Shown here in pieces: positions 1 to 63,985 of a stretch of 64,000 nucleotides of DNA. How positions within the stretch are numbered: the stretch's first letter is position 1; each line of letters opens with the position of its first letter. Below the pieces are notes generated by a model. That model worked only from the letters and a program-made list of their open reading frames with translations, had not been told where the DNA came from and made no database searches. This stretch comes from Histomonas meleagridis 2922-C6/04-290x (taxonomy: Eukaryota > Protista > Parabasalia), in assembly GCA_020184695.1 (NCBI GenBank), contig JAANOX010000037.1, forward strand, positions 62,001 through 126,000, read 5' to 3'. A program made the position numbers and the translations under genes.

Positions 1-274
1 CCATCTTGAAAACATGTTTTTTTGTTTTTATTTGCGCTTCAACGTTGTGATCGTTGAAGCCGCATTCAAATTTCTGTACAGTTGTGTCAAAACTCGACTT
101 TTTGTGTTAAAAATTATCGTAGTTCTTCGTTTGGGTTGTAATCGGAATTCCGATTTTTTTTTAGCATATTTTGAATTATAAAAATCAAAAAGAATCATAT
201 TTCCCATAAACCACAAATTATAGTTTAAGTTGATTGAAAAAAGAAAAAAAATTGATGTGTCTGTTTACTAATTA

Positions 275-1351: not shown

Positions 1352-1633
1352 ATATAATTTTGGAAAAAACAAGCATCCAAATGGACGGTTGAACCGATTC
1401 AAAAAAAAAATTCAATGGTATAAAATCTCCTTTTCGATAGAAAATTATATCGTTGTGTTAAAAATTTCAATGTTCATTACATATAGTACCGTCTCTTTGG
1501 TGTGAAAACGTCGCTTTTGTCGCGAAAACACGTCATAGCAACGTTTATTCAAATTTATGTTCAAAAATAGGTGAGCAAACTTATTTCAAATATCTCAATA
1601 AATAATACAGATTTGATTCACTAACCAAATTTA

Positions 1634-3336: not shown

Positions 3337-3781
3337 TTAATTCAAATCTGTAAGTTTTGGAAAGTTAAACCTTGTCACTAATCTAAAGTATATATATACA
3401 TAAATATTTTTGAATATCAGACTACATTAAAATTTTGAAATTTCATTTTTGTTTTAAGAATATTTCCACTTTTTTTTGTTGTCCAGAAGATTTGAATGTT
3501 GATATTTAACCAAGAGATGAAATTCTATAAGTAATATATTCTATAATCTTTAAAAAATAACTACATAAAAAGATACACATTACCACATATTGTTCATTTT
3601 GCACAAAGTCCATGAGGCACCTTCTTGCACATACTAACAATAAAAAAATAAAGTTCCACATTTTGTTTTACATGTAATATATAAATTAAGTAATTTTGTC
3701 TTACAAATTTTACAAAATATGTATTTTTTTCTGAACTCAAATTGTAAATCATATCTGTAAAAATTCACTACATGACGATCG

Positions 3782-5694
3782 TTGTTTGAAAAGTTTGCCT
3801 GTCATTTTCCGATTGAAAAATTGGAAGTTGCTCGTAAAGCATTACAAAAGAAGAAACAGGAAAAGGAAATACGCAAAATTAAAAGCCTGTTAGTTTCATA
3901 TCAAGAAAGAATAAAAATTTTAGAAAGTGTTGTAAAAAGGATATCACCAAATTCAATGCCACCTAAAGGCAATTCGCAACAAAGGGAATGGTTTTCGGCG
4001 TTTGAGAACATCAATGATGAAAAATTGAGTGATCAGATTGAAATTTCTTTCGGTGAGAAAATTTTATCAGAAATATTCAAGGTTTAATGAGAATGGACGT
4101 AGGTACAGTGATGTTATGCTCAAGCTTTCTTTCATTATTAGATGTCTCGGTCCAAAGTCATATGATTACCTCAGAAATATTTTGGCATTACCTTCAAGGC
4201 AAACATTAGAAAATCACTCTGGTAGTTTTACTAAGGGATGGAGAGATGTGCTGATGGATGTTGAATCAATTAAGATTTTGGTAAATTTATTTCGTAATAT
4301 GAATAACATTCCTAAAAGTCAATTGATTGATTCTGTGATAGGAATAGATGCCATGTCAATTGAGCCTATATTCGATTGTAATGCTGGAACTAATATTGAA
4401 AACAAAAAGCAATCAAACAATGTTTTAATGATGAATTTAATGCCTCTTGATCCACAGTACAAACAATTGCCCATTCATATAATGACAAAAGATAATGGAT
4501 CTGCAGATCTTAATATTAAAAAGAGAATAAACAAAGTCATTGAGAAGCTCAAAGAAGTAGGAGTAAATGTGCTTTATAAAGCAACTGATGGTGACAAAGG
4601 TTATATGGAATGGCATTGGGACTTTCTTAGCAAGTGGTGGCAATTGTATCAAACGGAAGGAATTAATGCAGCAGTTGAATACGTGAGTTCATTATCAGAA
4701 ATTCCAATAGCTGATCCTTTGCATCTTGGAAAAAATATGCGCAGCAGAATTTTAAATAGCTCTGTTTCATTAAGAATAGATGGGAAAAATGCTTTTTCGG
4801 CACCTGACATGGCGCAAATTTTGAATTTTGGAGATGCTCTTACTGACAAATCTTCAATGGGGAAAATGAAGGATTTATATGTTTTCGAGATTTTTGATTT
4901 TCAAATTTTTTTTGAATTGATGAAACAAAGACAATTTAGTATGGCTTTGTATATATTGCCATTTGCAGCTTGGTTTGAAGCGTTAAGAAATCCGAGTTTA
5001 ACTTTTCAAGCAAGAATTAGAGTTTTTAGAGTTTATTTTCCACATTTTTGCTCTGCATCGTAAATGGGTTGAAAATCTTGCACCAGGTGTTACACAAAAT
5101 AAAAAAAAGCAAGGGGTTCAATATTATTGCAGTAAGTCATGTTTGACAAGGATCTTAAACATATTGATAGCGATGATAACTGAAAAAATAAAAAAACCAG
5201 AATCCCTTGCTTTAGATTGTATGCGAACACATTCCCTAGAGTGCTTATTTGGACAAGTTCGCTTGCTTTGCAACTACAAACATACCCTAGGCAGAGTGAT
5301 TAAAAGCATATCAAAAGTATTGATTGTGAAGAGCCTAGTAACAGAGTTGAATCTGCCTCTTAAGATAAGAAATAGGATTAATATAAAAGGTGTGAAAATG
5401 ACTGGTTCAGCGCATGAGAACATCTGAATAAAGAGATCAGATGAATATGTACAATATTTTCTTCAAACATTGTACATATTCATCAATGAAGAAGTTTGTC
5501 CATATTTAAATCAGGGAATTCCTGAACAAAGTTTAATTACGTTCAATGAATATATGAATTGGCTTCATGAAACGTATCGCACATGGGAGCTACATGGGCA
5601 AAGTTTGGAGAAGTGCTACAAGGGAAGCCGTGTTTCCAATTTGACGATTATATCTAGATTAATTAATTTTAAGAGAGAAGATGAATTCATATAA
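3782..5694 (+). mobile_element. P-element/THAP9-like transposase, disrupted
   Basis: Motifs GPKSYDYLRNILALPSRQTL, IGIDAMSI, ATDG, DPLHLGKNMRSR and HSLECLFGQVR. Frameshifts near 4080 and 5045, in-frame TGA at 5425-5427. No TIRs found. Confidence 0.75.
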
Positions 5695-6117
5695 AAAATT
5701 CAAAATTTATTTATTTGTGAATTTAAAAAATATACTTATAGTTTAAGCTATCCACAACAACAAATTTTCTAATTTCATCCAAAAAAAAAGAATCATTCAA
5801 ATAGAGCCTGGCTTTTTCAGTGAAATACGATCACAACCACAGGGGTGGGTTGGAATGTGATTGAATAGTTAACATCGAAATTGAATGATTTTTGTGAATT
5901 TAAAAAATATTAATAAAAACTGAATGCAAAAACAGGTTGAATAGAAAATGAAATGAATGGTTTACCAAAGGGTAGGGAACAAAGTATCGATCATTCAAAA
6001 AATGGAACCCTGCTTCGACTTGGTCAATTTATTGTTAAATCGAATGCATAAAGTCAAGTGCATGCTTAATATAGAAGTCTAACTTAAGGCAGGTTCTAAT
6101 TTATAATTTATAATAAA

Positions 6118-6277
6118 GGAATTGATGTTAATGCAAAAACTATTCATTTTAATAATTTGAAACATGTTTTAATAATTTGAAACAGCACTTCATATAGCAG
6201 TCATAAATAATAATATGGAAATAGTACAATTACTTTTAGATAAAGAAATTAATATCAAAACAATTTTGTCCACTTAA
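6118..6277 (+). pseudogene. Orphan 3' end of a split-ankyrin array (GIDVNAKT, 40-nt spacer, terminal cassette TALHIAVINNNMEIVQLLLDKEINIKTILST*)
   Basis: Manual translation. Spacer 6142-6181. Same subfamily as the 28.9-30.5 kb array. Confidence 0.8.
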
Positions 6278-6559
6278 GGATGATGTTATAAATTAATTTA
6301 TCTGAAAGACGTAATTTTGTTATAAAGTAATAGATTGTATCTTCTACTGCTTCTCGAACTTCAGATGTTATAAGCGCTGGACTTTGTTCATTTGGTGTAT
6401 TAAGTACTAGCCAAAAGATTAATTTATGACTGCATCAGTTTTAAGTTCTTGTTTCTTTTTAAAAACACATGTCCCTCTAAAATTAATAAAAAAATCCGAT
6501 CTTCCTAAATCTTTAGTCTGAACAGGATGCTCCAGTAGAATTGAACTAATTCATTTTGT

Positions 6560-7150
6560 TCTTTTTGCATTGCTTTGTCAAGTAAATCACTAAATAATTG
6601 GATTGATCTAAAAATATTATTTGGAAACATAAATTCATGAAACTAAATATGAATATTATAAATAAGAATTCCTTCTTTGTCAAGTAATAATTTAATTATT
6701 TTTGAATGGCCTTTTTGAGCTCTCATGAGTGCCGTAAAAAATATTCTAAACAAATTCCAAATCTTATATTAAAATATCAAATTATTAAAATAAATTCTGA
6801 ACAAAACAAATAAATATCTTTAGCATTATTCCTTCTTGTTCTAGAAGTAAAAGAAATGTTTCTGTTTTACTTTTTTTTGATGCAAGTATACATACTGTTT
6901 AAAATGATTGAAATAATTTCAAAATGTTTTTTGAAATATGAAACGATTAAGATGAATATAACATAAAATATAAAAAGATTTTTACAATTGACATTAATTT
7001 CTTTGTGCTCACGAATTAATTTAAAGACTTTTGTTTTGCTATATTTAGATGCACTTAGGAATACTGTATTAAATATTTCACAATTATTATATTGAAATAT
7101 AAAATTATTGAAGCAAATTTTATCAATAATTTTTTCTTGAATTCGATATC
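6560..7150 (-). pseudogene. Degenerate split-ankyrin cassette array
   Basis: Minus-strand cassettes start at 7067 (TVFLSASKYSKTKVFKLIREHKEINVNCKN), 6898 (TVCILASKKSKTETFLLLLEQEGI, 7-nt deletion) and 6735 (TALMRAQKGHSKIIKLLLDKEGI). Spacers of 79 and 80 nt match the consensus. Confidence 0.7.
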
Positions 7151-7377
7151 TGCAGGATTCATACCTATGTTTTTTTGTTCAAAAAAAATAATTTTACATA
7201 TGTAGATAGATAATTTTTTTTTGACATTATCATATTTAATACTTAAAACATTTTACATTTTAAAGATACTATCATAATTAAATTTCGATATGGAAATTCA
7301 CATCCTAGAAATTTTCTAATGTCACTTTTGTTATTACACATAAAGGTGCAAAAAGATAAAAATATAACAAATCAAAA

Positions 7378-8562
7378 ATGAATGAAACACTTCAAAATAT
7401 CAAACAAATAATATTTAGTTTAGACAAAGAAAATATTATTCGCTCAATAAACTTAATAATTAACAAATTTGATCATACTCATCCATATTCATTTAATTTA
7501 ATCATTATTCATATGTTATACATTTCATTTATTTTGGAAGTAAAAGATTATGGAATATATATAAAATTCATAATGGAAATTCAAAAATTCGAAGAAAATA
7601 AAAAAATCAAACCAGCATTTAATAAAATTTTGAAGAATTATCTATTATGCAGACAATATGAGCATGAATCTTTTTATCTTCTTGATAAATTGATTGAATG
7701 TAGTTTTATTGAACCATACATTTTCAAAGATATAGCATATTTTATACATCGTTTTCCAAAAAAAGGCTATCAAATCGTAATTTCAGATAAATTTCATAGA
7801 AAAATCGCGGAAAATTATGAAGAATTATCAAAGAATGATTGGGAGCTTCATAAGAAATTAATTGAAGAAGGAGTGAATCCAAATGAAATTGCTAAAATGA
7901 TTCGAAATAATGAAATAGAAAAACTTCAAGAAATATCATCACAACCAAATTTTGATTTTAATCAAACAATAGAACCATCACTTTATGAAAGATGTTCTTT
8001 TATTAGCCAAAGTAATGTTACATTAATTGATTATGCAGCATTTTTTTCTTCTGTTAAATGCTTTAAATATTTACTTATGAATGGTGCAAATGTATATAAT
8101 GCAGGTAAATATGCAGTTGCAGGTGGAAATCTTGAAATTATTCATTTATGTCAACAAAATCATGTATCATTTAAAGATGCATATGAAACTGCAATTCAGT
8201 TTCATAAAAATAATATTTTTAAATATCTTTATGAAAATAAAATTTTAATAGTCAATAGTTCCGAAAAATTAGGTGCTAAATGTATCAAATATTATAACTA
8301 TGAACTTTTTACATTTTTAGAAAAAGAAGGAATGGATGTCACCAATTATATTATTAATAAAACAGCAAAAATTGGGAATTTGTATCTTGTAAAATATTTT
8401 CTTCATAATCATCAAATTCCAAATGATATCATAGTTTCTTCAATAAAATCACAAAATATTGAACTTATAAAATTTCTTTTGATGCAAAAAGGGTTTGATA
8501 TTAATGCTAAAAATATATATTTATTTTATTTATTATTTATTTCAATTTTTTTATATTTCTAA
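7378..8562 (+). CDS. DUF3447-type ankyrin-repeat protein, first coding block of split locus C
   Basis: LIDYAAFFSSVKCFKYL, AVAGGNLEIIHLCQQ and AIQFHKNNIFKYL are typical of the trichomonad DUF3447/ankyrin family. The ORF ends inside the first spacer. Confidence 0.85.
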   Translation: MNETLQNIKQIIFSLDKENIIRSINLIINKFDHTHPYSFNLIIIHMLYISFILEVKDYGIYIKFIMEIQKFEENKKIKPAFNKILKNYLLCRQYEHESFYLLDKLIECSFIEPYIFKDIAYFIHRFPKKGYQIVISDKFHRKIAENYEELSKNDWELHKKLIEEGVNPNEIAKMIRNNEIEKLQEISSQPNFDFNQTIEPSLYERCSFISQSNVTLIDYAAFFSSVKCFKYLLMNGANVYNAGKYAVAGGNLEIIHLCQQNHVSFKDAYETAIQFHKNNIFKYLYENKILIVNSSEKLGAKCIKYYNYELFTFLEKEGMDVTNYIINKTAKIGNLYLVKYFLHNHQIPNDIIVSSIKSQNIELIKFLLMQKGFDINAKNIYLFYLLFISIFLYF

Positions 8563-9500
8563 ATAATATTTGGAAAATATTTAATTTATTTGAAACAGCA
8601 CTTATTTATGCATCTAAAAAAGGTTATACAAAAATAGTTAAATTACTTCTTGAGCAAGAAGGAATTGATATTAATGCAAAAAATATTTATTTGTTTCATA
8701 TATTATTTATTTTAATAATTTGATATTTTAAAATAATATATGGATATTATTTATATAATTTAGAACAGCACTTATAATTGCAACTTTTTATCATCGCATA
8801 AAAATAATTGAAATGCTTCTTAATCAAAAAGAAATCGATTTAAATGTTAAAGATATTTCTTTACTTTATTGATTAAATAATTTGATTATTTGATGTTTAA
8901 AAATAATATTTCAAAATTATTTATATAATATAGGACTGCATTTATGTCTGCAATTCTAGAAGGTGATTGTGAATGTGTGCAATTATTTATCGAAAAAGAA
9001 GGAATTGATATTAATACCTTTGATAATTATTTTACTTATGTGAAATTTAATAAAATAATTTTATGATTTAAAATAATATTTGGAAATTGTTTATATTATT
9101 TAGAACACCACTTATGTTAGCATCTGAAAAAGGTAAAACTGAAATAATAAAATTACTTCTTAAACAAAATGTTATTAACATCAATTCTAAAAATATTTTT
9201 TTGTTTCATGTAATGTGTAATCAAATTGTTTGATGGTTCAAAATAATATATGGAAATTTTTTCAATTATTTAAAACAGCACTTATTATAGCGTCTGAAAA
9301 AGGCTTCCCTGAAATTGTTAAATTACTTCTGTTTCAAAAAGGAATTAATATAAATGTTATAGATATTTATTCATTTAATTCAATATATATTTTAATAATT
9401 TAATATTTCATTCTAATTTTTGGAAATTAATCAAATTATTTAAAACAGCTTATGCATATGCAACTCAAAAACGCAACATTAAAATTTGTTGCATACTATT
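8515..9500 (+). repeat. Split-ankyrin array C: six 80-nt spacers alternating with 90-nt ankyrin cassettes, exact 170-nt period
   Basis: Cassette Thr codons at 8595, 8765, 8935, 9105, 9275 and 9445. The five internal cassettes are stop-free. Confidence 0.95.
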
Positions 9501-9525
9501 TTTCTGTTTGCCAAAAGTTTTATAT

Positions 9526-9810
9526 CTAATGTTTTCTTGTATTTCTCTTTTTGTTGTTATTTTTTTGAGCTTTAGGTGGGTTTTTCTTGGCTTTTTTAGC
9601 TTGTGGAAGTTGTATACTAACACTCATGTTAGTGTCAATTCCACTTTGTTGAAGAAGTAAATTTATTATTTCAGTATTGCCTTTTTCAGTTGTTAAAATG
9701 AATGATGTTTTAAATGTTCCAAACAATTTCCGAATATTATTTTAGAATTTTTGATATTTTCAAATTGAATATTCTTTTTTGTTTTAAAAGTAATTTGAAA
9801 ATTTCAATTT
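9526..9810 (-). pseudogene. Orphan ankyrin cassette remnant, convergent with array C
   Basis: Minus strand: EIFKLLLKQK, a partial spacer ending TAATATTCGGAAATTGTTTGGAACATTTAA, then TSFILTTEKGNTEIINLLLQQSGIDTN (cassette 9619-9708). Confidence 0.65.
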
Positions 9811-10185
9811 TATTACTTCTAATTGCGAGAATAATAAATTCATGAAATATAATTTTGGATCGATTTTTTGAAAAATTTAATTTTTTTCAGTCATTCATAA
9901 TTAATTACATATATTTTATATTATATTGATCTGAAACATAGTAAAAAAGAAAATTAATTCAATTTTTTTTTTCTTCAATTTGTGTAAAAAAATATTATGA
10001 AGAGAAAAAAAGATTTTATTATTGACTTTTCGTTTGATTTCAAACAAAAATAACAAGGCATTTCGAAGTAATAGTAAAGTCGATTATTACCATATGAAGT
10101 CATTAAGAATAATATTAACAATGCTTAAAAAAATCCGAAAAATTAGAAAAAAATTTCATTCTCTAACACGATAAACAAAATTTAT

Positions 10186-24197: not shown

Positions 24198-26630
24198 TTA
24201 AATATCTCGCAATCCTTCAGGGCGCCTACGTGTGGTTCTTGCTCTTCTTTTTCTGGTGTCAGGAATACCTTGGTATGTCGAAGGGATAATTGGTTTATCA
24301 GCGTTAGCGGTGGCATTGGAGGTAGTGGAGGTAGTCGGAGGTGGCCTGATTTGGTTAGGTTCGATTTTTTGGCTGAACCTGTTTTCTAAGAATGCTCGAT
24401 AATTTTCATTAATTTTAATTCTTCCAATTGGTTTTTCTATGTTGTTATTTTTGATTTCTTTCTTTGGTATTACTTCTTCTTTCTTTGGTATTACTTCTTC
24501 TTTCTTTGGTATGATTACTTCTTTCTTTGGTATGATTACTTCTTTCTTTGGTATTACTTCTTCTTTCTTTGGTATGATTACTTCTTTCTTTGGTATTACT
24601 TCTTCTTTCTTTGTTATGATTACTTCTTCTTTCTTTGGTATTACTTCTTTCTTTGTTATGATTACTTCTTCTTTCTTTGGTATGATTACTTCTTTCTTTG
24701 GTATGATTACTTCTTCTTTCTTTGGTATTACTTCTTCTTTCTTTGTTTGGATATCACCTGATGTGCTTTGTCTTGCTTTTTCCACCAAATCACCAATTTC
24801 CTCTTTAACTTCATTAAACATATTCTCTATTTGATATGAATACGTTTTGAATAAGTTTGGATCAGTGAGATATTTTTCAGCCTCGAACAGTACATCTGAT
24901 ACTTTTTCTTCTTCTTCAGACGAAATTGTACCATTAGCCTTACCCTTTTCCATAGCTTTTCTTGAATAATTACAATAATTTTGGAATGTTTCTTTTGCAC
25001 TAATCTTCCTATTAAATTCTCTATTATTATTAAACATATCTTCTTCTTTTTTATCCTTCTTTTGTTCATTTAATGAACTATTTAATGAAATAGTAATACC
25101 TTTAACATTACCCGAAGTTAAATCTTGAGCTGAAACATGCATAATACCATCTTCATCCACATCAAAATAAATTTTGATCTTTTGATTTACTCTCGGTGCT
25201 GGAGGTATGTTATTTAAATAAAATACACCAAGTAATTTGTTGTTAAATACTTTTTCACTTTCACCTTCATAAACTTTGATTGAAGCTTCTTTTTGATAAT
25301 CTTTTGAGGTAGAGAAATATCTAAATGCCGTTGTTGGTAAAACTGTATTCTTGGGTATAAATACAATCATTTTCCGACCTGTTGCTTCCACCCCTAATGG
25401 ATAAGGATTAACGTCTTCAAGTGTAAAGTTTTGAATTGATGGCGATGGATCTTTTTTAAGAACAGCAGCAATAAGTGAAGCACCAAATGCTATTGCTTCT
25501 TCTGGATCGATATCACAACAAATTTTCATGGATCCAAAATAGTCATTAAGCATTTCTTTGATATATGGAATTCTAGATGAGCCTCCAACAAGAACAACAT
25601 TATCTATCTTTGATTTTTTCAAATGTGCATCCTTTAAAACCTTTTTGACTGTCAATAATGTTGAGTCGAAAAGGTTTTTGTTGAGTTCATTAAATTTATC
25701 TCGATCAATAGGTTCGGTTATATAATTATTATTATTATCCAGACAATTAACAGTGGTACGGAACATTTGCGAAAGATTTATTTTTGCTTTTTCACATGCA
25801 TCTTTTAAAAAATGAAGTAAACGTTGTGATTTTCGTGGATCGAAATTATATTTCTTTTGAAAAATAGATGTTATGTAATTAATTAAATTATTATCAAAGT
25901 CTTGTCCACCAAGATGTGAATTTCCTGCTGTTGCAAGAACTCGAAAATGTGATCCATTAACAAGCAAAATTGATGCATCAAATGTTCCGCCACCAAGGTC
26001 AAAAACGAGAATATGTTTCTCGCCTTGGGGTTGAGTTTTATACGCATATGCTAGTGCCGCTGCTGTTGGTTCATTGATTATTCGGAGGACGTTTAAGCCT
26101 GCACATTTCGCAGCTTCTTTGGTTGCTTGTCTTTGGCTGTTATCAAAGTAAGCGGGAACTGTAATAACGGCGTCCGTAACAGTAGCCATAAGATTTTCTT
26201 CTGCAACCGATTTCATTTTCTCTAAAATAATCCCTGAAATTTCTTCTGGCAAATATAGCTTGGGTTGATTACCAAGTTGAATCTCTATCAGTGGCTGATT
26301 GTTGGTACCTTCAACAACTTTAAAAGGCCATGTTTTCTTATCGTTTTGAATTATTTCATCATTATATTTACGTCCTATCATACGTTTGGTATCATAAATA
26401 ACATTCCTAGGATTTTCTGCTAAACCAAATTTCGCTTCTTCACCAACAATTATTTCATCTTCTGTAAATGCCACCAGAGATGGTGTTGCCTTATTATCAA
26501 TTTGATTTTTCATAATTGTGCATTGATCATTATAAAAGACACCAACACAAGATCGTGTTGTTCCTAAATCAATCCCAATTGCACCTGTGAATTTGGGTTG
26601 ACGCTTCATAACAATGTTTAAAAATGCCAA
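24198..26630 (-). CDS. Hsp70/DnaK family protein with a repetitive C-terminal extension
   Basis: [56 protein letters not shown]. Confidence 0.93.
24460..24740 (-). repeat. Coding tandem repeat KKE(E)VI(I)P/T in the Hsp70 tail
   Basis: About 13 units of 18-24 nt (plus strand TTCTTTCTTTGGTATGATTAC and variants). Confidence 0.9.
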
Positions 26631-27035
26631 AAAAAGGTTACATCTTTTTTTTTTTTCCTTTTATTCCCCATTCTGATGGAGATAATAAGGGATAATCACA
26701 GATAAAAGCAGTACTGTACAAAGTAAACATATTATACTTGTTTAAAATTTATAATATCTTTCTTTTCCTTTTCGAAAAAATAATGAAGAACATTCGTTTT
26801 TTGTGGGAGAAAAAAAAAGTATCAAATCAAAAAGTGGATCAATCGCACTGTCATAATCTTTGTCAAAATACTTACCCTTCCTATTATTGACACTTTTCGT
26901 TGCCAGTCAACGACCGTTAAAATTTTGATATCCATGGATGAACGATCGTTCCCGGTTTTCCTGTGAAATTTTTTTGAATGTGTTCCTGTCACTTTTTTGT
27001 TATTGGGGTGTACGTTTAAATTCTCGTTAGATCAA

Positions 27036-28418
27036 ATGACTGAAGAACAAAAGAAACAATTCGCAAAAAAACAACCTGCTAAATGCAGAACAACAGATTT
27101 CTTTTGGCGTGGAGGAGATCCCCTTCGAGAACAAGAGTATTTGATCGAAGAATACAAAAAAGCTCTTGCTGAATTTCGACAAAGTGAAGCACAATTAAAA
27201 GCAGCTAAAAAAGATGTAAATGATGCGCAAGATGTGCTTAATGAACGAGAAGGTTATGCCATTGCCTTAGCTTCATATTTAGAACAAGACACCACATATT
27301 CCAGAAAAGAGAGAGAACTAAGAGCTGAACTATCAGATCTCGAATCTGAAATTGAAAAGAAAGATCGAGAACTTAGGGTTATCAAATCTATTCATAATCC
27401 AGCAACGTCAAGTGCACTTGTGAAAGAAAATGCAACATATATGATTGAAATTCAACGAGGCAATCAGACAATCGAAAATTACAGATCACAGCAAGATGAG
27501 TACAAAAGACAAATGGCAGCATGTACAGTTAATAATAGATATCGCCATGCTCTTGAACTCGAATATGAAAGAGATCGAACACAAAACAAGAAAATACATC
27601 TCCACAAAATTGTAAACAGCACAAAAAATGAGTTTGAAGAACAAAAAATAATTAAAATACTTCAAGATCCCGACTCAAGAATTGAAAGAAATGCACTTCA
27701 AAGACTTGTCCCTCTTGAAGTCGAGATAGCTCTTTTGGAAGAAAAGCTGAATCTTCATCCTACAAAACATGATAATTATTTATCATTATTAATCGATCAA
27801 ATTGAAGAACTTAACAGTAGAATGGAAGAGATTGGGTTAGGTGATGAAGTTGTTGCCACTGGGAAGATAAAAGAGAAAGTTTTTGGAGGGACCACAGATA
27901 GTGATGAATCATCTGAATATGCAAAATCAGACACAGAAAACAAAACAAATTCGTCTGGTGAAGAAAGGAAAGACAGCTCTAAATCAGATAAATCTCATTC
28001 AGACAGTGATAAAAGTAAATCACAAAATGAATCACATTCTGAAAACAATAAAACTGAATCGCATTCAGATAACAACAAAAGCTATTCTCAAACTGATAAA
28101 CGTCGAAATGAATCACATTCTGAATTTAGTAAAAATAAATCAAATTCAGATAATGATACACATTCGAACTATAGTAATAATAAATCGCACTCAGACAGTG
28201 CTAAAAGTGAATCTTTGAATGATAAACATCAAACTGAATCACATTCTGAATTTAGTAAAAATAAATCTGATTCAAGTAGCGAAAAAAGTGAATCGTCAAA
28301 TGATAAACATCAAAAGGATTCACATTCGGATTATAGTAATAATAAATCACATTCGGACAAAAGTGATTTCCAAAATGGAAAACAGAAAGAAAATTTTTCA
28401 GATGATTTTGATGAATAA
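27036..28418 (+). CDS. Hypothetical coiled-coil protein with a Ser/His/Lys/Asp-rich repetitive tail
   Basis: First ATG at 27036; heptad-like N-terminal two thirds; repeated ESHSEFSKNKS and SHSD motifs. Confidence 0.75.
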   Translation: MTEEQKKQFAKKQPAKCRTTDFFWRGGDPLREQEYLIEEYKKALAEFRQSEAQLKAAKKDVNDAQDVLNEREGYAIALASYLEQDTTYSRKERELRAELSDLESEIEKKDRELRVIKSIHNPATSSALVKENATYMIEIQRGNQTIENYRSQQDEYKRQMAACTVNNRYRHALELEYERDRTQNKKIHLHKIVNSTKNEFEEQKIIKILQDPDSRIERNALQRLVPLEVEIALLEEKLNLHPTKHDNYLSLLIDQIEELNSRMEEIGLGDEVVATGKIKEKVFGGTTDSDESSEYAKSDTENKTNSSGEERKDSSKSDKSHSDSDKSKSQNESHSENNKTESHSDNNKSYSQTDKRRNESHSEFSKNKSNSDNDTHSNYSNNKSHSDSAKSESLNDKHQTESHSEFSKNKSDSSSEKSESSNDKHQKDSHSDYSNNKSHSDKSDFQNGKQKENFSDDFDE

Positions 28419-28639: not shown

Positions 28640-28950
28640 AAGTATTTATAAATTGCATTTGGAATTTCTTCAAATGAGAAGTTTTGTCACTATTATGGGC
28701 ATCTTCAAATGGTCATACAGAAATAGTTAAATTACTTCTTGAACAAGAAAGAATCGATATTAATGCTAAAGATATTTAACTATTTTATTTTGTATTTATT
28801 TAAATAATTTGAATTTCCAATTTTTTTCCGAAAATTATTTATTTGATTTCAAACAGCACTTATGAATGTAACTTGGATCAACAATATATAAATAATAAAC
28901 TACTTTCGACTCGTAAAGATTTCAAAGATGATAATTTTATTGTTCATTTA
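28640..28950 (+). pseudogene. Orphan split-ankyrin remnant, convergent with array F
   Basis: Cassette 28684-28773 (LSLLWASSNGHTEIVKLLLEQERIDINAKD), 79-nt spacer, then a degenerate TALMNVTW cassette. Confidence 0.75.
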
Positions 28951-30473
28951 AGTAAATAACTTGTTTTAATATTAATTTCTTTATCAAAAAGTAATTTTAC
29001 TATTTCTATATTATTATTTTTAACTGCTATATGAAGTGCTGTTTCAAATTATTAATACATATTCCAAATTATTAAAACATATTCTAAATTATTAAAACAT
29101 ACATCAAATTATTAAAACATATTCTAAATTATTAAAACATATTACAAATTATTAAAACATACATCAAATTATTAAAACATATTCTAAATTATTCAAATGA
29201 ATAGTTTTTGCATTAACATCAATTCCTTCTTTCTCTAAAAGTAATTTTTACTATTTCTATATTATTATTTCTAACTGCTATATGAAGTGCTGTTTCAAAT
29301 TATTAAAACATATTAAAAATTATTAAAACATATTCTAAATTATTAAAACATATCCAAAATTATTAAAACATATTTCAAATTATTAAAACATATTCTAAAT
29401 TATTAAAACATATTTCAAATTATTAAAACATATTTCAAATTATTCAAATGAATAGTTTTTGCATTAACATCAATTCCTTCTTTCTCTAAAAGTAATTTTA
29501 CTATTTCTATATTATTATTTCTAACTGCTATATGAAGTGCTGTTTCAAATTATTAAAACATATTAAAAATTATTAAAACATATTCTAAATTATTAAAACA
29601 TATTACAAATTATTAAAACATACATCAAATTATTAAAACATATTCTAAATTATTAAAACATATTAAAAATTATTAAAACATATTTCAAATTATTAAAACA
29701 TATTTCAAATTATTAAAACATACATCAAATTATTAAAACATATTCTAAATTATTCAAATTAATAGTTTTTGCATTAACATCAATTCCTTCTTTCTCTAAA
29801 AGTAATTTTACTATTTCTATATTATTATTTCTAACTGCTATATGAAGTGCTGTTTCAAATTATTAAAACATATTAAAAATTATTAAAACATATTCTAAAT
29901 TATTAAAACATATTACAAATTATTAAAACATACATCAAATTATTAAAACATATTCTAAATTATTAAAACATATTTCAAATTATTAAAACATACATCAAAT
30001 TATTAAAACATATTCTAAATTATTAAAACATATTACAAATTATTAAAACATACATCAAATTATTAAAACATATTCTAAATTATTCAAATGAATAGTTTTT
30101 GCATTAACATCAATTCCTTCTTTCTCTAAAAGTAATTTTACTATTTCTATATTATTATTTCTAACTGCTATATGAAGTGCTGTTTCAAATTATTAAAACA
30201 TATTAAAAATTATTAAAACATATTCTAAATTATTAAAACATATCCAAAATTATTAAAACATATTTCAAATTATTAAAACATATTCTAAATTATTAAAACA
30301 TATTACAAATTATTAAAATGAATATATTTTGCATTAACATCAATTCCTTCTTTCTCTAAAAGTAATTTTACTATTTTTATATTATTATTTTTAACTGCTA
30401 TATGAAGTGCTGTTTCAAATTATTAATACATATTCCAAATTATTAAAACATATTCTAAATTATTCAAATGAAT
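28944..30473 (-). repeat. Split-ankyrin array F: near-identical cassettes separated by expanded 20-nt minisatellite spacers
   Basis: Spacers of 60, 140, 240, 220, 160 and 160 nt built from AATAATTT(AGA/GGA/GTA/GAT/GAA/TTA)..ATGTTTT 20-mers. Cassettes read TALHIAV(K/R)NNNIEIVKLLLEKEGIDVNAKT; the last ends with TGA at 28944-28946. Confidence 0.95.
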
Positions 30474-31583
30474 AGTTTTTGCGTTAATATCAATTCCTTT
30501 ATCTAAAAGTAATTTTACTATTTCAATATTTCCTGATTCAACCGAGCGCAATAAAATTGTATTTGGAATTTGTTGATTTTCTATGATACTATCCATTAGA
30601 AATGTATTTCCATTTCTTGCAATTTCCTCTATAATATCTTCAGTTATTTCCTTTGTTTCTTGTTCTAAAAATGAAAAAATTATATAATTATTATAATTCA
30701 GACATATTTTTTTAAAATATGCAATGTCTTTTTCAGATTTACCATGATTTATATTAGGTGATTGTTTATTGGATTTTGTTATAACTTCTCCTTTTTTCTT
30801 TTCATAAAGATATTTAAAGATATCATTTTTATGAAATTCAATTGCTGTTTCATATGCATCTTCAAATGATGAATGATTCTGTTCACATAAATGAATTATC
30901 TCTAAACTTCCACCTGCAACTGCATATTTACCTGCGTTATCTATTTTAGAACCATTCATAAGTAAATATTTAAAACATTTAACAGAAGAAAAAAATGCTG
31001 CATAATCAATTAATTTAACATTTTCTTGATTAATAAATGAACATCTTTCATAAATTGATGGCTCAATGATTTGATTAAAGTCAAAATTTGGTTGTGATGA
31101 TATTTCTTGAAGTTTTTCTATTTCATCATTTCGAATTATTTTTGCTATTTCATTCGGATTATGCCCTTCTTCATTAAAATTCTTCAGGTTAGCAAAATCA
31201 TTATTTAGAACCAATTCACAATTTTTCTTATTGTATTTTGCAGGATCTGTTTCGAATAATCCTTGTTCGTCCATCTTTCGAAGAAGGAAAAATGATTCTT
31301 GTGTTGTTGTTTGCAGTAAGTATAGATTAAATATATGAACTAGGTTTGTTGTATTTTTATTAGTTTTTTCTTCTTCTAAATTTAACATCAATAAGTATTT
31401 AAAAATTGGGAATTTGACGTTTAATTGAGAAGCAAATGCTGTATATATGAACCCAGAAATAAGAAGATTGAATGTGTATTGTCTATTGTAAGTAAATAAT
31501 TCTATTGTTGATTGAACTGATGATTCGATATTTTCTTCGTTGAGATTAAAGATGATTGACTGCAACGATTTAGAGAGCTCCAT
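30423..31583 (-). CDS. DUF3447-type ankyrin-repeat protein, first coding block of split locus F
   Basis: Same family motifs as 7378..8562; ends at TAA TAA inside the first 60-nt spacer. Confidence 0.85.
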   Translation of the reverse strand: MELSKSLQSIIFNLNEENIESSVQSTIELFTYNRQYTFNLLISGFIYTAFASQLNVKFPIFKYLLMLNLEEEKTNKNTTNLVHIFNLYLLQTTTQESFFLLRKMDEQGLFETDPAKYNKKNCELVLNNDFANLKNFNEEGHNPNEIAKIIRNDEIEKLQEISSQPNFDFNQIIEPSIYERCSFINQENVKLIDYAAFFSSVKCFKYLLMNGSKIDNAGKYAVAGGSLEIIHLCEQNHSSFEDAYETAIEFHKNDIFKYLYEKKKGEVITKSNKQSPNINHGKSEKDIAYFKKICLNYNNYIIFSFLEQETKEITEDIIEEIARNGNTFLMDSIIENQQIPNTILLRSVESGNIEIVKLLLDKGIDINAKTIHLNNLEYVLIIWNMY

Positions 31584-31964: not shown

Positions 31965-32037
31965 GCTTCTGTAGCCCAGTGGTTAGAGCGTTCGCCTAGT
32001 AAGCGGAAGATCGCGAGTTCGACTCTCGCCAGAAGCA
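31965..32037 (+). tRNA. tRNA-Thr (anticodon AGT), intronless
   Basis: Acceptor stem GCTTCTG/CAGAAGC, D arm with TGG, anticodon arm TTCGC-CTAGTAA-GCGGA, T arm GCGAG-TTCGACT-CTCGC; followed by a T-run (Pol III terminator). Confidence 0.96.
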
Positions 32038-49145: not shown

Positions 49146-49451
49146 TTATTGTAGAATTTAAATAAAAACAAAGCGTTAAATAAATTTTTATTAAATTTTG
49201 TTATCAGGGAGATACCTAAAACTAATAAAGTGATAATGCATTTAGAAGATTGTGAGATTTGTTCGGAATTGTTCTGGCAAACTCGAATTTAAATCATAAT
49301 TGAATAAATTTATACGATGTATACACATGAAGTGTATTTCTACCAAATTTATCTTTTCTTATTCCTAATGATGTGTGAAATGACCATTTATGTATTCAAA
49401 ACCATAAACGTGCGCCTTTTATTTGGAAGAAAAAAAATTCTATCGAACCAC

Positions 49452-50717
49452 ATGAATACACTTACCACACTCCAAAATTTAATATTCGATTTAACCGAGG
49501 AAAGTCTTGAGTCTTCCACTCAACAAATAATAAAATTATTTGACGTAAATTACCCCTATTCATTTAATTTTGTTTTAAGCAGGTTAATTTATAGTGCATT
49601 TTGTTCACACGTAAAAAAATGTGATGATAATGTATATATAAATTTTATTGAATTAATGCAACAAAAGGAAAAAGAAATTATTAAAAATAATTTTCAAATA
49701 ATTGAAATTTGTTGTAATGTTTTAATCAAATTTAATTCTCAAGAATCATATTATTTTATAGAAAAAATTATTGAGAAGAATTTAGTTGATACCAGCATTA
49801 CAAGAAATATTAATAGTTTATATTTTTCACATTATAAAACAGATAAAGAAAACCAAAAAATTATTCATAAAATTACTCAAAAATATAATAGTTTTAATTT
49901 GGTTCAAAAATACTTTTTGGATAATTATGAAAAATTATCAAAGAATGATTTTAAACTTCATAAGCAATTAATTAAAGAAGGAGTTAATCCAAATGAAATT
50001 GCTAAGATAATTCGAAATGATGAAATAGAAAAACTTCAAGAAATATCATCACAAACAAATTTTGATTTTAATCAAACAATTGAACCATCACTTTATGAAA
50101 GATGTTCATTTATTAATGAAGAAAATGTTACATTAATTGATTATGCAGCATTTTTTTCTTCTGTTAAATGTTTTAAATATTTACTTATGAATAATACAAA
50201 TGTAGTTAATACAGGCAAATATGCAATTGCAGGTGGAAATGAAGAAATTATTCATTTATGTGAACAAAATCATTCAACATTTAAAGATGCATATGAAGCA
50301 GCAATAGAATTTCATCGAAATGATATCTTTAAATATCTTTATGAAAACAATATAGAAGAAATTGATAATAAAAAAATCAATTACCTAAGGATAATATGCA
50401 TAGAATATAACAATTATGAACTCTTAACATTTTTAGACAAATGGGATACATGTATTTCTAATTATGTTATCAACAATGCTGCAAAGACAGGTAATTTAAT
50501 GCTTGTTAATTTTTATCTTCAAAATAATCAAATTCTCAATGATATTTTGGTAATCTCCTCGAAATCTGGAAATAGAGAACTTGTTAAGTATTTTCTCGAA
50601 CAAGGAATTGATGTTAATAGTAAAGATTTTTATTTGTTTTATTTGATATTTCTTTTAATAATTTTTAATTTCAAAATAACATTTGGAAATCATTTTGAAT
50701 ATTTTATACATCACTAA
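49452..50717 (+). CDS. DUF3447-type ankyrin-repeat protein, first coding block of split locus H
   Basis: Family motifs as above; likely start MNTLTTLQN at 49452 (ORF track starts 49317); runs through the first spacer and stops out of frame in cassette 1. Confidence 0.85.
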   Translation: MNTLTTLQNLIFDLTEESLESSTQQIIKLFDVNYPYSFNFVLSRLIYSAFCSHVKKCDDNVYINFIELMQQKEKEIIKNNFQIIEICCNVLIKFNSQESYYFIEKIIEKNLVDTSITRNINSLYFSHYKTDKENQKIIHKITQKYNSFNLVQKYFLDNYEKLSKNDFKLHKQLIKEGVNPNEIAKIIRNDEIEKLQEISSQTNFDFNQTIEPSLYERCSFINEENVTLIDYAAFFSSVKCFKYLLMNNTNVVNTGKYAIAGGNEEIIHLCEQNHSTFKDAYEAAIEFHRNDIFKYLYENNIEEIDNKKINYLRIICIEYNNYELLTFLDKWDTCISNYVINNAAKTGNLMLVNFYLQNNQILNDILVISSKSGNRELVKYFLEQGIDVNSKDFYLFYLIFLLIIFNFKITFGNHFEYFIHH

Positions 50718-52304
50718 ATTTAGCATCTAAAGAAGATGATTCAGACATAGTTAAATTACTTCTTGAACAAAAAGGAATTGATATTAATGCTAAAGATATT
50801 TGTTTGTTTAATTTGATATTTATTTTAATATTTTGATATTTCAAAATGATACTTGGAAATTATTTAAATTATTTGAAACAGCACTTATGATTGCATCTAT
50901 CGAAGGTGATAAAGAAATAGTTAAATTACTCCTGAAACATAAAGGAATTGATGTCAATGCCAAAGATATTTATTTATTTTATTAGCTATTTTCTTAAATA
51001 ATTTTTTATTTTAAATTAATATTTGGAAATTCTTTAAATTGTTCTTAACAGCTCTTAGTATTGCAACCACAAGAGGATACACAGAAATAGTTAAATTGCT
51101 TCTTGAGCTAGATGGAATTGATGTTAATACTAAAGATATTTAATTATTTTATTTGATATTTATTTTTATAATTTGATTTTTCATAATATAACATGGAATA
51201 TATTTAAATTATTTGATACAGCACTCTTTTTTGCATATATACATAAAAATATAATAATATTCAAAATGCTTCTTAAACAAAAAGGGATTGATATTAATGT
51301 TATATATATTTGTTTCGATAATTTTCACTCTCAAAATTGTATTTCGTAATTATTTAAACTATTTTTCACAATACTTATGGATGCATCAGAAAAAGGTAAC
51401 ATAGAAATTGTTAAATTACTTCTTAAACAAGAAGGGATTGATATCAATTTTAAAAATGTTTATTTGTTTTATTCGATATTTATTTTAATAATTTTTTATT
51501 TGAAAATAAAATAAGGAAATTATTTAAATTCTTTGATTCAGCACTTATTTTGGCAACTCAAAATAGTCATGTAAAAATAGTTAAATTGCTTCTTGAGAAA
51601 GAAGGAATTAATATAAATATCAAAGATTTCTATCTGTCTAATATATAAATTATTGTAATAATTTAATATTATAATATAATATTTGGAAACTATTTCAAAC
51701 ATTTGAAACAGCACTTATTATTGCATCTTTCGATGGGAATACTGAAATAGTTAAATTACTTCTTGAAAAAGAAGGAATAGATGTTAATTTTAAAACTATT
51801 TATTTGTTTTGTTTGATGTTTGTTGGATGAATATAATATTCCAAAATCATATTTGGAAATTATTCAAAATATTTTGTACACCACTTAATATTGTATCAGC
51901 AAATGGAATTATAGAAGTCGTTAAATTGCTTATTGAACATGAAGAAATTAATGTTAATGCTACAGATATTTATTTATATTATTTGATATTTATTTTAATA
52001 ATTTGATATTTCAAAATAATATTTGGAAATTATTTGAGATATTTAGAACAGCACTTATTTTAGCATCTTTAAATGGTCATATAGAAATAGTTAAATTACT
52101 TCTTGAACATGAAGGAATTGATATTACTGCTAAAGATATTAATGCGTTTTAATTAAAATTTATTTACAAAATTTGATATTACAAAATAATATTTGGTAAC
52201 AGCATAATACATTTAATACAGCACTTATTTATGCAACACAAAAAGGTTTCACAGAAATTATTAAATTAATTCATTTAAAAAAAAAAAAAATTAATGAATG
52301 CTAA
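50628..52304 (+). repeat. Split-ankyrin array H: ten spacers (nine of 80 nt, one of 60 nt) and ten cassettes
   Basis: Cassette first codons at 50708, 50878, 51048, 51218, 51368, 51538, 51708, 51878, 52048 and 52218. A further decayed unit lies near 52400. Confidence 0.95.
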
Positions 52305-52739
52305 TTATATTAATGTGTTTTATTTAAAATTTATTTCAATTATTTAGTTTTGTGATAATTCAAAAAATTACTTGGGAATTGATTAAAATATTGGAAAGGA
52401 AACTTATTATTGCATCTAAAAGTGAATATACTAGTCTTTTTTTAACTTGCTGGTAAATGTGATATCAAAAAATATATATGTTTAATATATAATATATGGT
52501 CAAGTCAACTTTTAATAATAATTTTGTTCGAAGGAAATTTTCATATTTTACCAGCAATTATAAAACGTGTGCGCACGATTCTCCCACATAAATAGCGCTT
52601 TATTTGAAAAAGTTCAACATAATTTACCTAGATACATATATATATATATAAAGATAAATATAAAACTAATAAAATAACACATTTACCTTATATCAAAATA
52701 AATATAATCAAAATCAAATTCAAAATTTATTATATTGAA

Positions 52740-62700: not shown

Positions 62701-63985
62701 ATGCAAAATATTAATTCTGTGTCACCTAAAAGTGATTTTGCATGTGAAGAACATTATAATGATATAGAAATACTTACATCGCTTCAGAAAATTATATTTA
62801 ATTTAACTCAAGAAAATTTGAATTTATCTGTAGATCAAACAATGAAATTATTTGATTCATATATTTCATATTCGTTTAATTTTGTCCTAAGTAATTTAAT
62901 TTATTTTGCTTTTGTGTCACGAATCAATCCAAGTGACATATATAAGTTATTTAGAATTAATTCAAACCAAAGAAGAAGAAAACAATCAAAATAATCCTAA
63001 AATTATTGAATATTTTGTTAAATATATATTAAATATTGGATCACAAGAATCATATTATTTAATAGAAAAAATGATTGAACAGAATTTAATTGATAAAAGA
63101 ATTACTAAAACGATTTATCCAGAATCAGTTTATTCGAAATATTTTGCGCATTATCAAACAGAAAAGCATAATAAAATATATTGTAATGATATAAGAGCAA
63201 AAGGATTTTTAGAAAATTATGAAGAACTATCAAAGAATGATTTTGAACTTCATAAGCAATTAATTAAAGAAGGACATAATCCAAATGATATTGCAAAAAT
63301 AATTCGAAATGATGAAGTTGAAAAACTTCAAGAAATAACATCACAAACAAACTTTGATTTTGAGCAAAAAATTGTTCCATCACTTTATGAAAGATGTTCA
63401 TATGTAAATAATTATGTTTCATTGATTAGTTATGCAGCGTTTTTTGGTTCAACGAAATGTTTTAAATATTTGATGCTAAATGATTTTAGATTTTTCGACA
63501 TTTGTAGATATGCAATTGCAGGTGGAAATCTTGAAATCATTCATTTATGTGAACAAAATCATTTGTCATTTTATGAATCATATGAAACTGCAATTAAATT
63601 TCATCGAAATGATATCTTTAAATATCTTTATGAAAATAAATTAGTAAAATCCGAAATTATCGATTATGATAAATTGGAATATGTATGTATTAATAGTGGA
63701 AATTATGAAATTCTTTTATATTTAGAAGAACAAGGAATAGAAATTACCAAGAAAATAATTAATAAAACTGCAAAATTTGGTAACTTATATCTCGTTAAAT
63801 ATTTTCTTCGAAAATATCAAAGACCCAATGATATCTTATTAAAATCAATCAAGTCAAGGAATTCTGATTTAGTAAAATATATTCTTGAACAAAAGAACAT
63901 TAATATTAATTTTTATAATATTAATTTTTATTGTTTCATATTTATTTTAATAATTCCATGTTTTTTATTCGTTTTCAAAGTTTAA
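62701..63985 (+). CDS. DUF3447-type ankyrin-repeat protein (split locus I), with a 1-nt frameshift near 62940
   Basis: The N-terminal block in ORF 62665..62994 overlaps ORF 62906..63985. It ends in a spacer at 63920-63999 (80 nt to the expected Thr codon); the array is presumably cut by the window end. Confidence 0.75.

Follow-up and report, generated by a model that had tools for sequence, protein, structure and literature searches.

Ankyrin repeats of Histomonas meleagridis are interrupted by 17-nucleotide elements alternating with single hairpin codons: candidate ultra-short non-canonical introns

The 64,000-nucleotide stretch of Histomonas meleagridis DNA analysed here (contig JAANOX010000037.1; the window) carries at 49317-52304 a gene of the DUF3447/ankyrin family whose repeats are scattered in the DNA. 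In the ankyrin arrays of the window, the repeats are not contiguous in one frame but lie 60-240 nucleotides (nt) apart, with stops in all frames. A first-pass annotation had described these interruptions as a single spacer at one fixed position of each repeat. We found instead that each 80-nt spacer consists of exactly four units of 17 nt plus 3 nt, and the 60-nt spacer of the main array of three such units. The spacer is thus a series of four 17-nt elements alternating with four isolated codons, which in order spell the ankyrin beta-hairpin x-[D/N]-G-x. This 17+3 structure is common to paralogues and related species, coding selection acts on both the cassettes and the isolated codons, and the 17-nt elements are not coding. 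On balance, the sequences favour the view that the elements are ultra-short non-canonical introns, removed from the pre-mRNA one by one and spread by duplication of a codon-plus-intron unit.

Exon 1 of the main gene (49317..50627, plus strand), delimited from the list of open reading frames (ORFs) and Pfam, has 437 codons from the ATG to ...EQGIDVNSKD and comprises an N-terminal region, DUF3447 and degenerate ankyrin repeats. Read straight through, its ORF enters the first insert and stops at 50717. In Pfam this ORF (49317-50717) matched DUF3447 (PF11929, E 1.4e-9) together with Ank_2, Ank and Ank_4, and three other ORFs of the window did likewise. Tandem Repeats Finder reported a 170-nt period over 50602-52336, and a cassette profile placed ten cassette starts at 50708, 50878, 51048, 51218, 51368, 51538, 51708, 51878, 52048 and 52218, spaced by 170 nt with one exception of 150 nt. 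The nine internal cassettes are open and exactly 30 codons long, which confirms what had been read from the DNA before, and the tenth has a stop at 52304. Pfam Ank (PF00023) was matched by nine of the ten cassettes (E 9e-9 to 4e-3; the terminal one was unmatched) at model positions 4-32 of 33; therefore, about four hairpin residues per repeat are missing from the cassettes. The spacer consensus of the first-pass annotation agrees with the one derived here, and its two remarks that nine of the ten spacers contain an upstream-frame stop and that no GT/AG pair is conserved in them also held.

All parts of the array lie on the plus strand, and cassettes 1 to 9 were placed by the profile and Pfam. 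Interruption 1 (50628..50707) contains four 17-nt elements and the triplets GAT TTA GGA TAT (DLGY) at 50645, 50665, 50685 and 50705, and leads into cassette 1 (50708..50797), which reads TSLNLAS...INAKD. The same build, with four elements each, is seen in interruption 2 (50798..50877; GAT GAT GGA GAA, DDGE) before cassette 2 (50878..50967), in interruption 3 (50968..51047; GCT TTT GGA TTA, AFGL) before cassette 3 (51048..51137), and in interruption 4 (51138..51217; GAT GAT GGA GAT, DDGD) before cassette 4 (51218..51307), which is the most diverged cassette and is still open. Interruption 5 (51308..51367) is a short form with three elements and the triplets TCA CGT TTC (SRF), and is followed by cassette 5 (51368..51457). 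Four elements are again found in interruption 6 (51458..51537; GAT TTT GGA GAT, DFGD), interruption 7 (51628..51707; ATA AAT GGA GAA, INGE), interruption 8 (51798..51877; GAT AAT GGA TGT, DNGC) and interruption 9 (51968..52047; GAT GAT GGA AGA, DDGR), which precede cassettes 6 (51538..51627), 7 (51708..51797), 8 (51878..51967) and 9 (52048..52137), respectively. Interruption 10 (52138..52217), also with four elements, carries AAA GAT GGT AAT (KDGN), in which the Gly and Asn codons are synonymous variants, and precedes the terminal cassette (52218..52304), a cap-like last exon that reads TALIYATQKGFTEIIKLIHLKKKKINEC and then its own stop codon. The array ends in a lysine-rich tail.

The four 17-mers of a spacer, ATTTATTTGTTTTATTT, ATTTATTTTAATAATTT, ATTTCAAAATAATATTT and AATTATTTAAATTATTT, are distinct and conserved. 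Guanine makes up 4% of the 17-mers versus 31% of the triplets, and the triplets vary more than the 17-mers, with the exception of the third (Gly) triplet. All 156 elements collected are exactly 17 nt long, and 149 start with a purine (AT in 91, GT in 28 and AA in 21). T is found at positions 2-4, A at position 14 in 137 of the 156, and TT at the end in 128; the 3' halves follow the consensus ..A.ATTT. The first and last bases, taken from the window arrays and from the contigs L001, L002, L003 and L007 described below, were A..T in 63, G..T in 23, G..C in 5 and A..C in 4 of 107 cases, so that the two ends of most elements could pair, which may be a hint on how they are recognised.

The isolated triplets read as protein. 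Of 26 spacers, taken from several arrays and species, 24 have a Gly codon as the third triplet, with GGA, GGT and GGG all used, and none of 104 isolated triplets is a stop, versus 3.8 expected (P=0.019). As a reference we used the best 150 ankyrin proteins, by profile score, from 1.84 billion representatives. In these uninterrupted proteins, consecutive matches to the cassette profile are four residues apart in 113 of 146 repeat pairs, and the four positions are K/N/D, D/N/Y, G (76%) and a variable residue. The 27 tetrapeptides encoded by the triplets scored +4.45 bits against this hairpin profile, compared with -3.23 +/- 0.72 for random sense triplets of the same composition and -1.15 +/- 0.74 for the same residues shuffled in order. 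These permutation statistics overstate independence, as the units share ancestry, and the hairpin reading was arrived at after inspecting the data. A four-residue hairpin (x-x-G-x) between the Histomonas repeats is present only if the isolated triplets are read. Considering that the triplets match the hairpin of uninterrupted proteins, removing 4 x 17 = 68 nt per unit restores the canonical 34-residue repeat. The proposal that loss of 68 nt per unit gives a normal repeat was therefore arithmetically right, but the 68 nt are four separate pieces, and the junction predicted from it, ...KDIxFETAL, is corrected to ...NAKD-DDGE-TAL....

Coding selection was assessed by neutral drift from the cassette consensus, with as many changes as were observed and with substitutions that follow the observed spectrum. 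Divergence between units is 20-30%, and its pattern is roughly star-like. In 13 cassettes, no stop was found in the cassette frame, versus 8.3 expected (P=0.0006), and the other two frames fit the neutral expectation. The spacers behaved neutrally in all three continuous frames, with 16, 20 and 57 stops observed versus 15.8, 24.2 and 63.5, respectively. Furthermore, cassette length is constant at 90 nt and spacer length varies. We looked for positional orthology between the two plus-strand arrays and found none.

The same layout had been noted elsewhere in the window, and we confirmed it on both strands. The second gene (7378..9660, plus strand; Pfam and profile), with the 8.5-kb array, has an exon 1 reaching 8514, cassettes at 8595, 8765, 8935, 9105 and 9275, and a terminal exon at 9445-9660. 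Its six spacers are all 80 nt, that is, 4 x (17+3), and give IYGE, IDGR, IDQR, EYGR, NDGK and NNGK. The last part of the terminal exon encodes a hydrophobic tail (about 45 residues) that could be a membrane anchor. The third gene (28944..31583, minus strand) has its exon 1 at 31583-30474 and cassettes at 30413, 30183, 29853, 29543, 29293 (frameshifted) and 29042 (terminal, with a stop at 28944). Its spacers measure 60, 140, 240, 220, 160 and 160 nt, all of which equal 17 + n x (3+17) + 3. The 17-mers here are almost invariant, ATATGTTTTAATAATTT or GTATGTTTTAATAATTT, and the triplets (AGA, GAT, GTA, GAA, TTA, TGG and GGA) are purine-rich sense codons without stops that would form charged loops of 3-12 residues; the 20-nt unit is the minisatellite called by Tandem Repeats Finder at 29045-30318. 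Relatives in Tritrichomonas musculus contain long hydrophilic in-frame insertions at the hairpin, and variable loop length is therefore tolerated in the DUF3447/ankyrin family. The minus-strand 17-mers start with GTATGT or ATATGT, and this type of start is the 5' splice-site hexamer of trichomonads and yeast (PMC6260720, PMC12316389). Each terminal cassette carries a stop of its own, and paralogues resemble each other in this cassette (29042 on the minus strand and 6182 on the plus strand).

Less well preserved copies also occur. Orphan, partly decayed cassette fragments lie beside the intact genes at 6115-6256 (plus), 6667-7067 (minus), 9628-9841 (minus) and 28684-28773 (plus), and some of them keep the 17+3 register (RDGF, YKGK, CSGV). 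Another array of H. meleagridis (L003, WSYJ01000186.1) has cassette stops and frameshifts and periods of 116-191 nt; its better units still give NDGL, NNGK and NSGN, and many of their elements start with GT (GTTTGT or GTTTCT). A Tc1/mariner-like transposase frame was seen at L003:5300-6600, between the N-terminal ORF of the DUF3447/ankyrin gene (annotated as 'caskin') and its decayed array, so that the transposase insertion disrupts this gene. A fourth DUF3447/ankyrin ORF of the window was identified by Pfam at 62906..63985 (plus strand), and the window ends about 80 nt past its last repeat, before an array, if any.

A family search found relatives of the DUF3447/ankyrin protein in Histomonas, Tritrichomonas foetus and T. 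musculus. Spacers of the same 80 nt, built as 4 x (17+3), were found in L001, L002 and L007, three Illumina gut-metagenome contigs of a relative that, judged from the sample source and the similarity, is possibly Dientamoeba. The hairpins encoded there are SSGY, YGGE, RAGY, DNGL, INGH, EGGV and NNGH, and the elements start with AT, GT, GC or GA. The identical spacers in these independent assemblies demonstrate that the pattern is neither chance nor an assembly artefact. An Oxford Nanopore (ONT) assembly error (170 versus 171 nt) was likewise ruled out by the Illumina contigs and by the downstream-frame stops. The possibility that ACAG at the cassette start is a splice site was also rejected: it belongs to the Thr codon after the spacer, which varies synonymously (ACA, ACG, ACC) in relatives.

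Orthologues from three other parabasalids (L087, L090 and L091) have a simpler structure. Their ORF ends ...DNKG and is followed, directly after the hairpin Gly codon, by one T-rich insert of 26, 29 and 28 nt, respectively (overall range in the three, 23-29 nt). The inserts start with GT, GT and AT, respectively, with GTTCTT or GTTTTA among the starts, and have no AG inside. Behind the insert, a 46-codon last ankyrin exon stops at the same place in all three. In this exon the ratio of nonsynonymous to synonymous change (pN/pS) is 0.17-0.25 when read in frame and 1.1 or more when the frame is shifted; for the upstream ORF it is 0.25-0.34. The last exon is under purifying selection and is therefore translated, so the insert must be removed. 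In another parabasalid with 25% G+C (L005:2380-3300; Logan SRR19599918), interruptions of 24 to about 190 nt occupy the same hairpin site and start with GT, AT or GC, and one is in frame and open; splitting these interruptions into fixed-length elements gave no consistent result. A protein-pattern scan of Joint Genome Institute (JGI) metagenomes gave no match, a spacer-motif scan of the same metagenomes gave 76 chance matches, none with cassettes, and a scan of GTDB genomes gave just two mis-binned contigs and no arrays. Two relatives of the DUF3447 protein, L094 (CALUSQ010000040.1; 50% identity) and L095 (CALXQM010000021.1; 30% identity), have 27-29% G+C and are filed under 'Gastranaerophilales' and 'Alphaproteobacteria' metagenome-assembled genomes; they are probably parabasalid DNA mis-binned into bacterial genomes.

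If the elements are introns, the main locus would be one gene encoding a protein of about 774 residues, in which the DUF3447/ankyrin N-terminal exon is followed by nine internal repeats of 34 residues each and by a cap repeat at the end. Each hairpin codon of the x-[D/N]-G-x series would be preceded by a 17-nt AT-rich element, and the 39 elements of the gene (663 nt) would be removed singly from the pre-mRNA, most likely by a spliceosomal-type process, given the purine-T start (AT, GT, AA), the near-fixed A14 and the TTT end. Their ancestors were probably short (23-26 nt) trichomonad introns that drifted to A+T and lost the 3' AG. The starting state would be a short intron after the hairpin Gly codon, as still seen in L087, L090 and L091. 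Tandem duplication of a 20-nt unit, made up of one codon and its intron, may then have taken place in the Histomonas lineage, which would leave single-codon exons among 17-nt introns and set the hairpin length; the single codons would have diverged to x-[D/N]-G-x, and amplification of the whole 170-nt repeat would have been the last step, setting the repeat number. We infer removal at the RNA level, its order and the machinery from the DNA. Non-canonical removal at the RNA level is also the best of the readings listed in the first-pass annotation, which had named ribosomal bypassing, DNA rearrangement and a silent cassette store beside it.

Several observations weigh against splicing of these elements. 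Neither 5.8 billion proteins nor the 150 best-scoring of 1.84 billion representatives yielded a spliced product; a family search, searches of cluster members and with the C-terminal region, and a profile search of the 1.84 billion representatives returned truncated ORFs or generic ankyrin proteins only. This absence is weak evidence because the protein collections appear to be without Histomonas RNA-derived assemblies. Of the 156 elements, 128 end in TT, only six contain AG at any position and only 28 start with GT, and no CTAAC-type branch motif was found in them. To our knowledge, no series of 3-nt exons separated by 17-nt introns has been described before. Neither conserved RNA structure nor conserved pairing was found in the spacers (fold z-scores -0.7 to +1.5), and structure-guided splicing was rejected on the lack of pairing. 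The pN/pS among paralogous cassettes (0.80) is no different from that of control frames (0.60-1.12) and is uninformative. Finally, decay is evident in some arrays of this genome, namely L003 and the fragments at 6.7 and 9.7 kb, and some members of the family are clearly pseudogenes.

A bolder version of removal from RNA is that the 17-nt elements form a new class of fixed-length intervening sequence, excised without GT-AG and recognised by its length, 5' purine and 3' ATTT. Such excision, which we regard as doubtful, would call for a strongly modified spliceosome or other machinery and would leave single-codon exons. If it did occur, the elements would spread as 20-nt codon-plus-element units, and loops would be lengthened and shortened by minisatellite dynamics.

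Alternatively, the cassettes may be dead. The product would then be the exon-1 ORF only, which closes in a hydrophobic tail within a few codons of entering the first spacer, and the cassettes would be untranslated relics invaded by a 20-nt minisatellite. A similar hydrophobic run closes exon-1 ORFs in several species, the elements are without canonical splice signals, the loci have no annotation and the searches gave no spliced homologue; in the minus-strand array the 20-nt unit acts like a minisatellite in expansion, and there are decayed arrays as well as orphan fragments. However, the cassettes are free of stops despite their divergence, and all are of exactly the same length; the triplets retain the canonical hairpin, the conserved Gly codon and synonymous changes; and the fixed 4 x (17+3) structure is retained in another species. 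The terminal cassettes have their own stops, and the exon behind the insert in relatives is under strong purifying selection. Neutral decay, which the first-pass annotation had named as the refutation of its proposal, thus applies to the L003 array and the orphan fragments at 6.7 and 9.7 kb but not to the main and 8.5-kb arrays, in which stops are depleted. Taken together, we consider it improbable that the main array is a relic.

One long non-canonical intron per spacer, joining the first 5' site, directly behind the cassette, to the last 3' site, ahead of the codon next to Thr, would avoid 3-nt exons. The internal triplets would be lost and the repeats would have 31 residues (...NAKD-x-TAL...). 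Every spacer equals 17 + 20n + 3, so removal would always be in frame, and the boundaries conserved best are the 5' one behind the cassette and the 3' one, ...AAATTATTT. Internal triplets lost in this way should drift, yet they are G-rich and stop-free, vary synonymously at the third (Gly) triplet and score as a hairpin in the right order, and the uninterrupted proteins with the same cassette have a four-residue rather than a one-residue hairpin. A single long intron is therefore quite unlikely. Single introns of the GT-AG or AT-AC type, or with shifted boundaries, were rejected since no conserved pair gives an in-frame junction.

It has also been suggested that the cassettes are a silent store, never expressed in place and serving as donors for gene conversion or unequal crossing-over into an expressed last repeat or other ankyrin genes. 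Recombination does change the repeat number and spacer length of the arrays, and many paralogous arrays lie within the 64 kb. It is unlikely, however, that second-order selection on silent donors would preserve 14 cassettes after such divergence, together with the triplets of their hairpins; the 17-nt elements would be copied along in any conversion, and the terminal cap exons with stops and the selected last exon in relatives would be left unexplained. We found no support for a store or for DNA rearrangement and regard a store as very unlikely.

Frameshifting in, or hopping over, each spacer of an unspliced mRNA by ribosomes is close to refuted. The 80-nt spacer has a conserved length that would give the same frame shift each time, and the consensus spacer is open in the downstream frame. 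However, only eight of 14 Histomonas spacers can be crossed from the upstream into the downstream frame without meeting a stop, versus 6.8 by chance, three spacers of the main array offer no such path, and downstream-frame stops occur at the neutral rate. Spacers of 60, 140, 160, 220 and 240 nt give other frame relations. The length of the insert modulo 3 differs between L087, L090 and L091, so a fixed ribosomal shift cannot serve; their inserts of 26, 29 and 28 nt would require opposite shifts. For bypassing, the take-off codons (GAT, GGA) are unlike the element ends (TTT), contrary to the matched-codon rule of hopping of the T4 gene 60 type. The frameshifting or bypassing raised in the first-pass annotation is contradicted by these data, and such recoding is extremely improbable. 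Equally remote is programmed DNA elimination in some cell type or life stage, as with the internal eliminated sequences of ciliates: the elements are short, AT-rich, of fixed length and without a splice consensus, but assemblies of growing cells contain them, whether made from long reads, short reads or metagenomes, they are not bounded by TA repeats, and we know of no nuclear dualism in parabasalids.

Serial ultra-short introns, the explanation that we favour, would have consequences beyond this family. Parabasalids are textbook intron-poor organisms with rigid splice motifs, and dozens of 17-nt non-GT-AG elements per gene would overturn this picture for the Histomonas/Dientamoeba lineage. 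The elements would rank among the shortest intervening sequences known, with serial 3-nt exons, and would point to a new way for proteins to evolve, by adjusting the length of loops through duplication of a codon-plus-intron unit. Standard RNA-seq aligners would score 17-nt gaps as deletions, as STAR does by default with gaps below 21 nt, and the phenomenon would therefore stay hidden. Censuses of Trichomonas introns discard junctions without canonical motifs (PMC12316389), so that 17-nt elements would be missed by design. Our literature search found no description of the 17+3 structure in Histomonas, Dientamoeba or other parabasalids.

Annotation was compared using the deposited H. meleagridis genome GCA_020186115.1 (28.7% G+C), in which the window corresponds to the reverse strand of contig WSYJ01000081.1. 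This annotation was made ab initio with AUGUSTUS, which predicted no more than one intron in any gene, and public H. meleagridis RNA-seq served to train it (PMC8529796). All four DUF3447/ankyrin ORFs of the window are missing from it, which bears out the expectation that gene callers would truncate or skip such genes. On the practical side, this veterinary pathogen and its relatives have a whole gene family absent or truncated in annotation. The 10 kb at 186-10185 have no deposited gene annotation at all, yet they contain a complete DUF3447/ankyrin gene and ORFs of 375 and 344 residues, the latter with a weak match to a P-element transposase helix-turn-helix at 4029-5063. The window is AT-rich (18-35% G+C) and holds long uninterrupted eukaryotic genes for an Hsp70 family protein, ADA2, a Vps15-like kinase, a BEACH protein, actin and the ribosomal proteins L3 and L19e. 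A giant virus or ciliate origin was ruled out once the proteins of the window had been traced to H. meleagridis. The sole RNA gene detected in the window is a tRNA-Thr (anticodon AGT) at 31965-32037. Other tandem repeats were seen in the Hsp70-family ORF at 24198-26630 (minus strand), where a 21-nt unit with 13.5 copies at 24456-24745 would encode a seven-residue repeat near the C-terminus, and in an ORF without a Pfam match at 26997-28418 (plus strand), which has nested 27-, 45- and 81-nt repeats at 28022-28359.

Among known systems, the non-conventional introns of euglenids are nuclear, lack GT-AG borders and pair between the intron ends, and are much longer; no conserved pairing or stable fold was found in the Histomonas spacers, and the elements are far shorter. 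Bypass elements, such as that of phage T4 gene 60 and the 'byps' of Magnusiomyces mitochondria, depend on a take-off codon that matches the landing codon and are each crossed in a single hop. They share with the 17-nt elements that they are short non-coding inserts in an ORF, absent from the protein and without splice signals, but the Histomonas codons do not match, and four hops per repeat would be required. Micro-exons and recursive splicing in animals and plants show that 3-nt exons exist and that close splice sites can be used sequentially. The micro-exons known to us are isolated, GT-AG and located between long introns, and we know of no description of four consecutive 3-nt exons per protein repeat. 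No U12-type or AT-AC motifs (5' RTATCCTT, branch TCCTTAAC, 3' AC or AG) were present in the elements, whose consensus is ATTTATTT...ATTT. The introns of Stentor coeruleus are 15-16 nt long, with GU-AG ends and a branch A at a fixed position, and its spliceosome handles introns of this size (PMC9505925). They resemble the Histomonas elements in their fixed ultra-short length, about 75% A+U and a fixed A near the 3' end (position 10 of 15 in Stentor and position 14 of 17 in 137 of the 156 elements). However, Stentor introns are GU-AG and lie in ordinary exons genome-wide, whereas the Histomonas elements are R-T...T-T, occur in one gene family as far as seen and are 3 nt apart.

The type B introns of Trichomonas vaginalis and T. 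stableri are 23-28 nt long and follow GTWYWD N7 TCTAAC H1-2 AACAG (PMC6260720, PMC12316389). They share with the elements the phylum, a very short length and AT-richness, and they also occur in repeat-protein genes (ankyrin, armadillo). The Histomonas elements lack the 3' AG and the CTAAC branch motif, and their first base is mostly A and not G. Set against the trichomonad 5' motif (GT with GYAYGY or GTWYWD), 28 of the 156 start with GT, 91 with AT and 21 with AA. A terminal 3' AG is not kept in the 156 elements, nor is any AG found in the inserts of L087, L090 and L091, and the fused branch and 3' splice motif (RCTAACACAYAG or TCTAAC..AACAG) matched the window at chance level, with no match in a spacer. 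The length of 17 nt is below the reported minimum of 23 nt, and up to 39 elements with single codons between them are found in one gene, whereas Trichomonas genes rarely have more than one intron. On the other hand, the three motif blocks of a type B intron (6+6+5 nt) add up to 17 nt once their spacers are taken away. The minus-strand 17-mer GTATGT-TTTAAT-AATTT is laid out like the blocks GTWYWD, TCTAAC and AACAG (PMC6260720) with C/G changed to T/A, a resemblance only. The type B 5' hexamer is also resembled by GTATGT/ATATGT in the minus-strand array and by GTTCTT/GTTTTA in the relatives, and the single inserts of L087, L090 and L091 (23-29 nt) fall into the type B size class.

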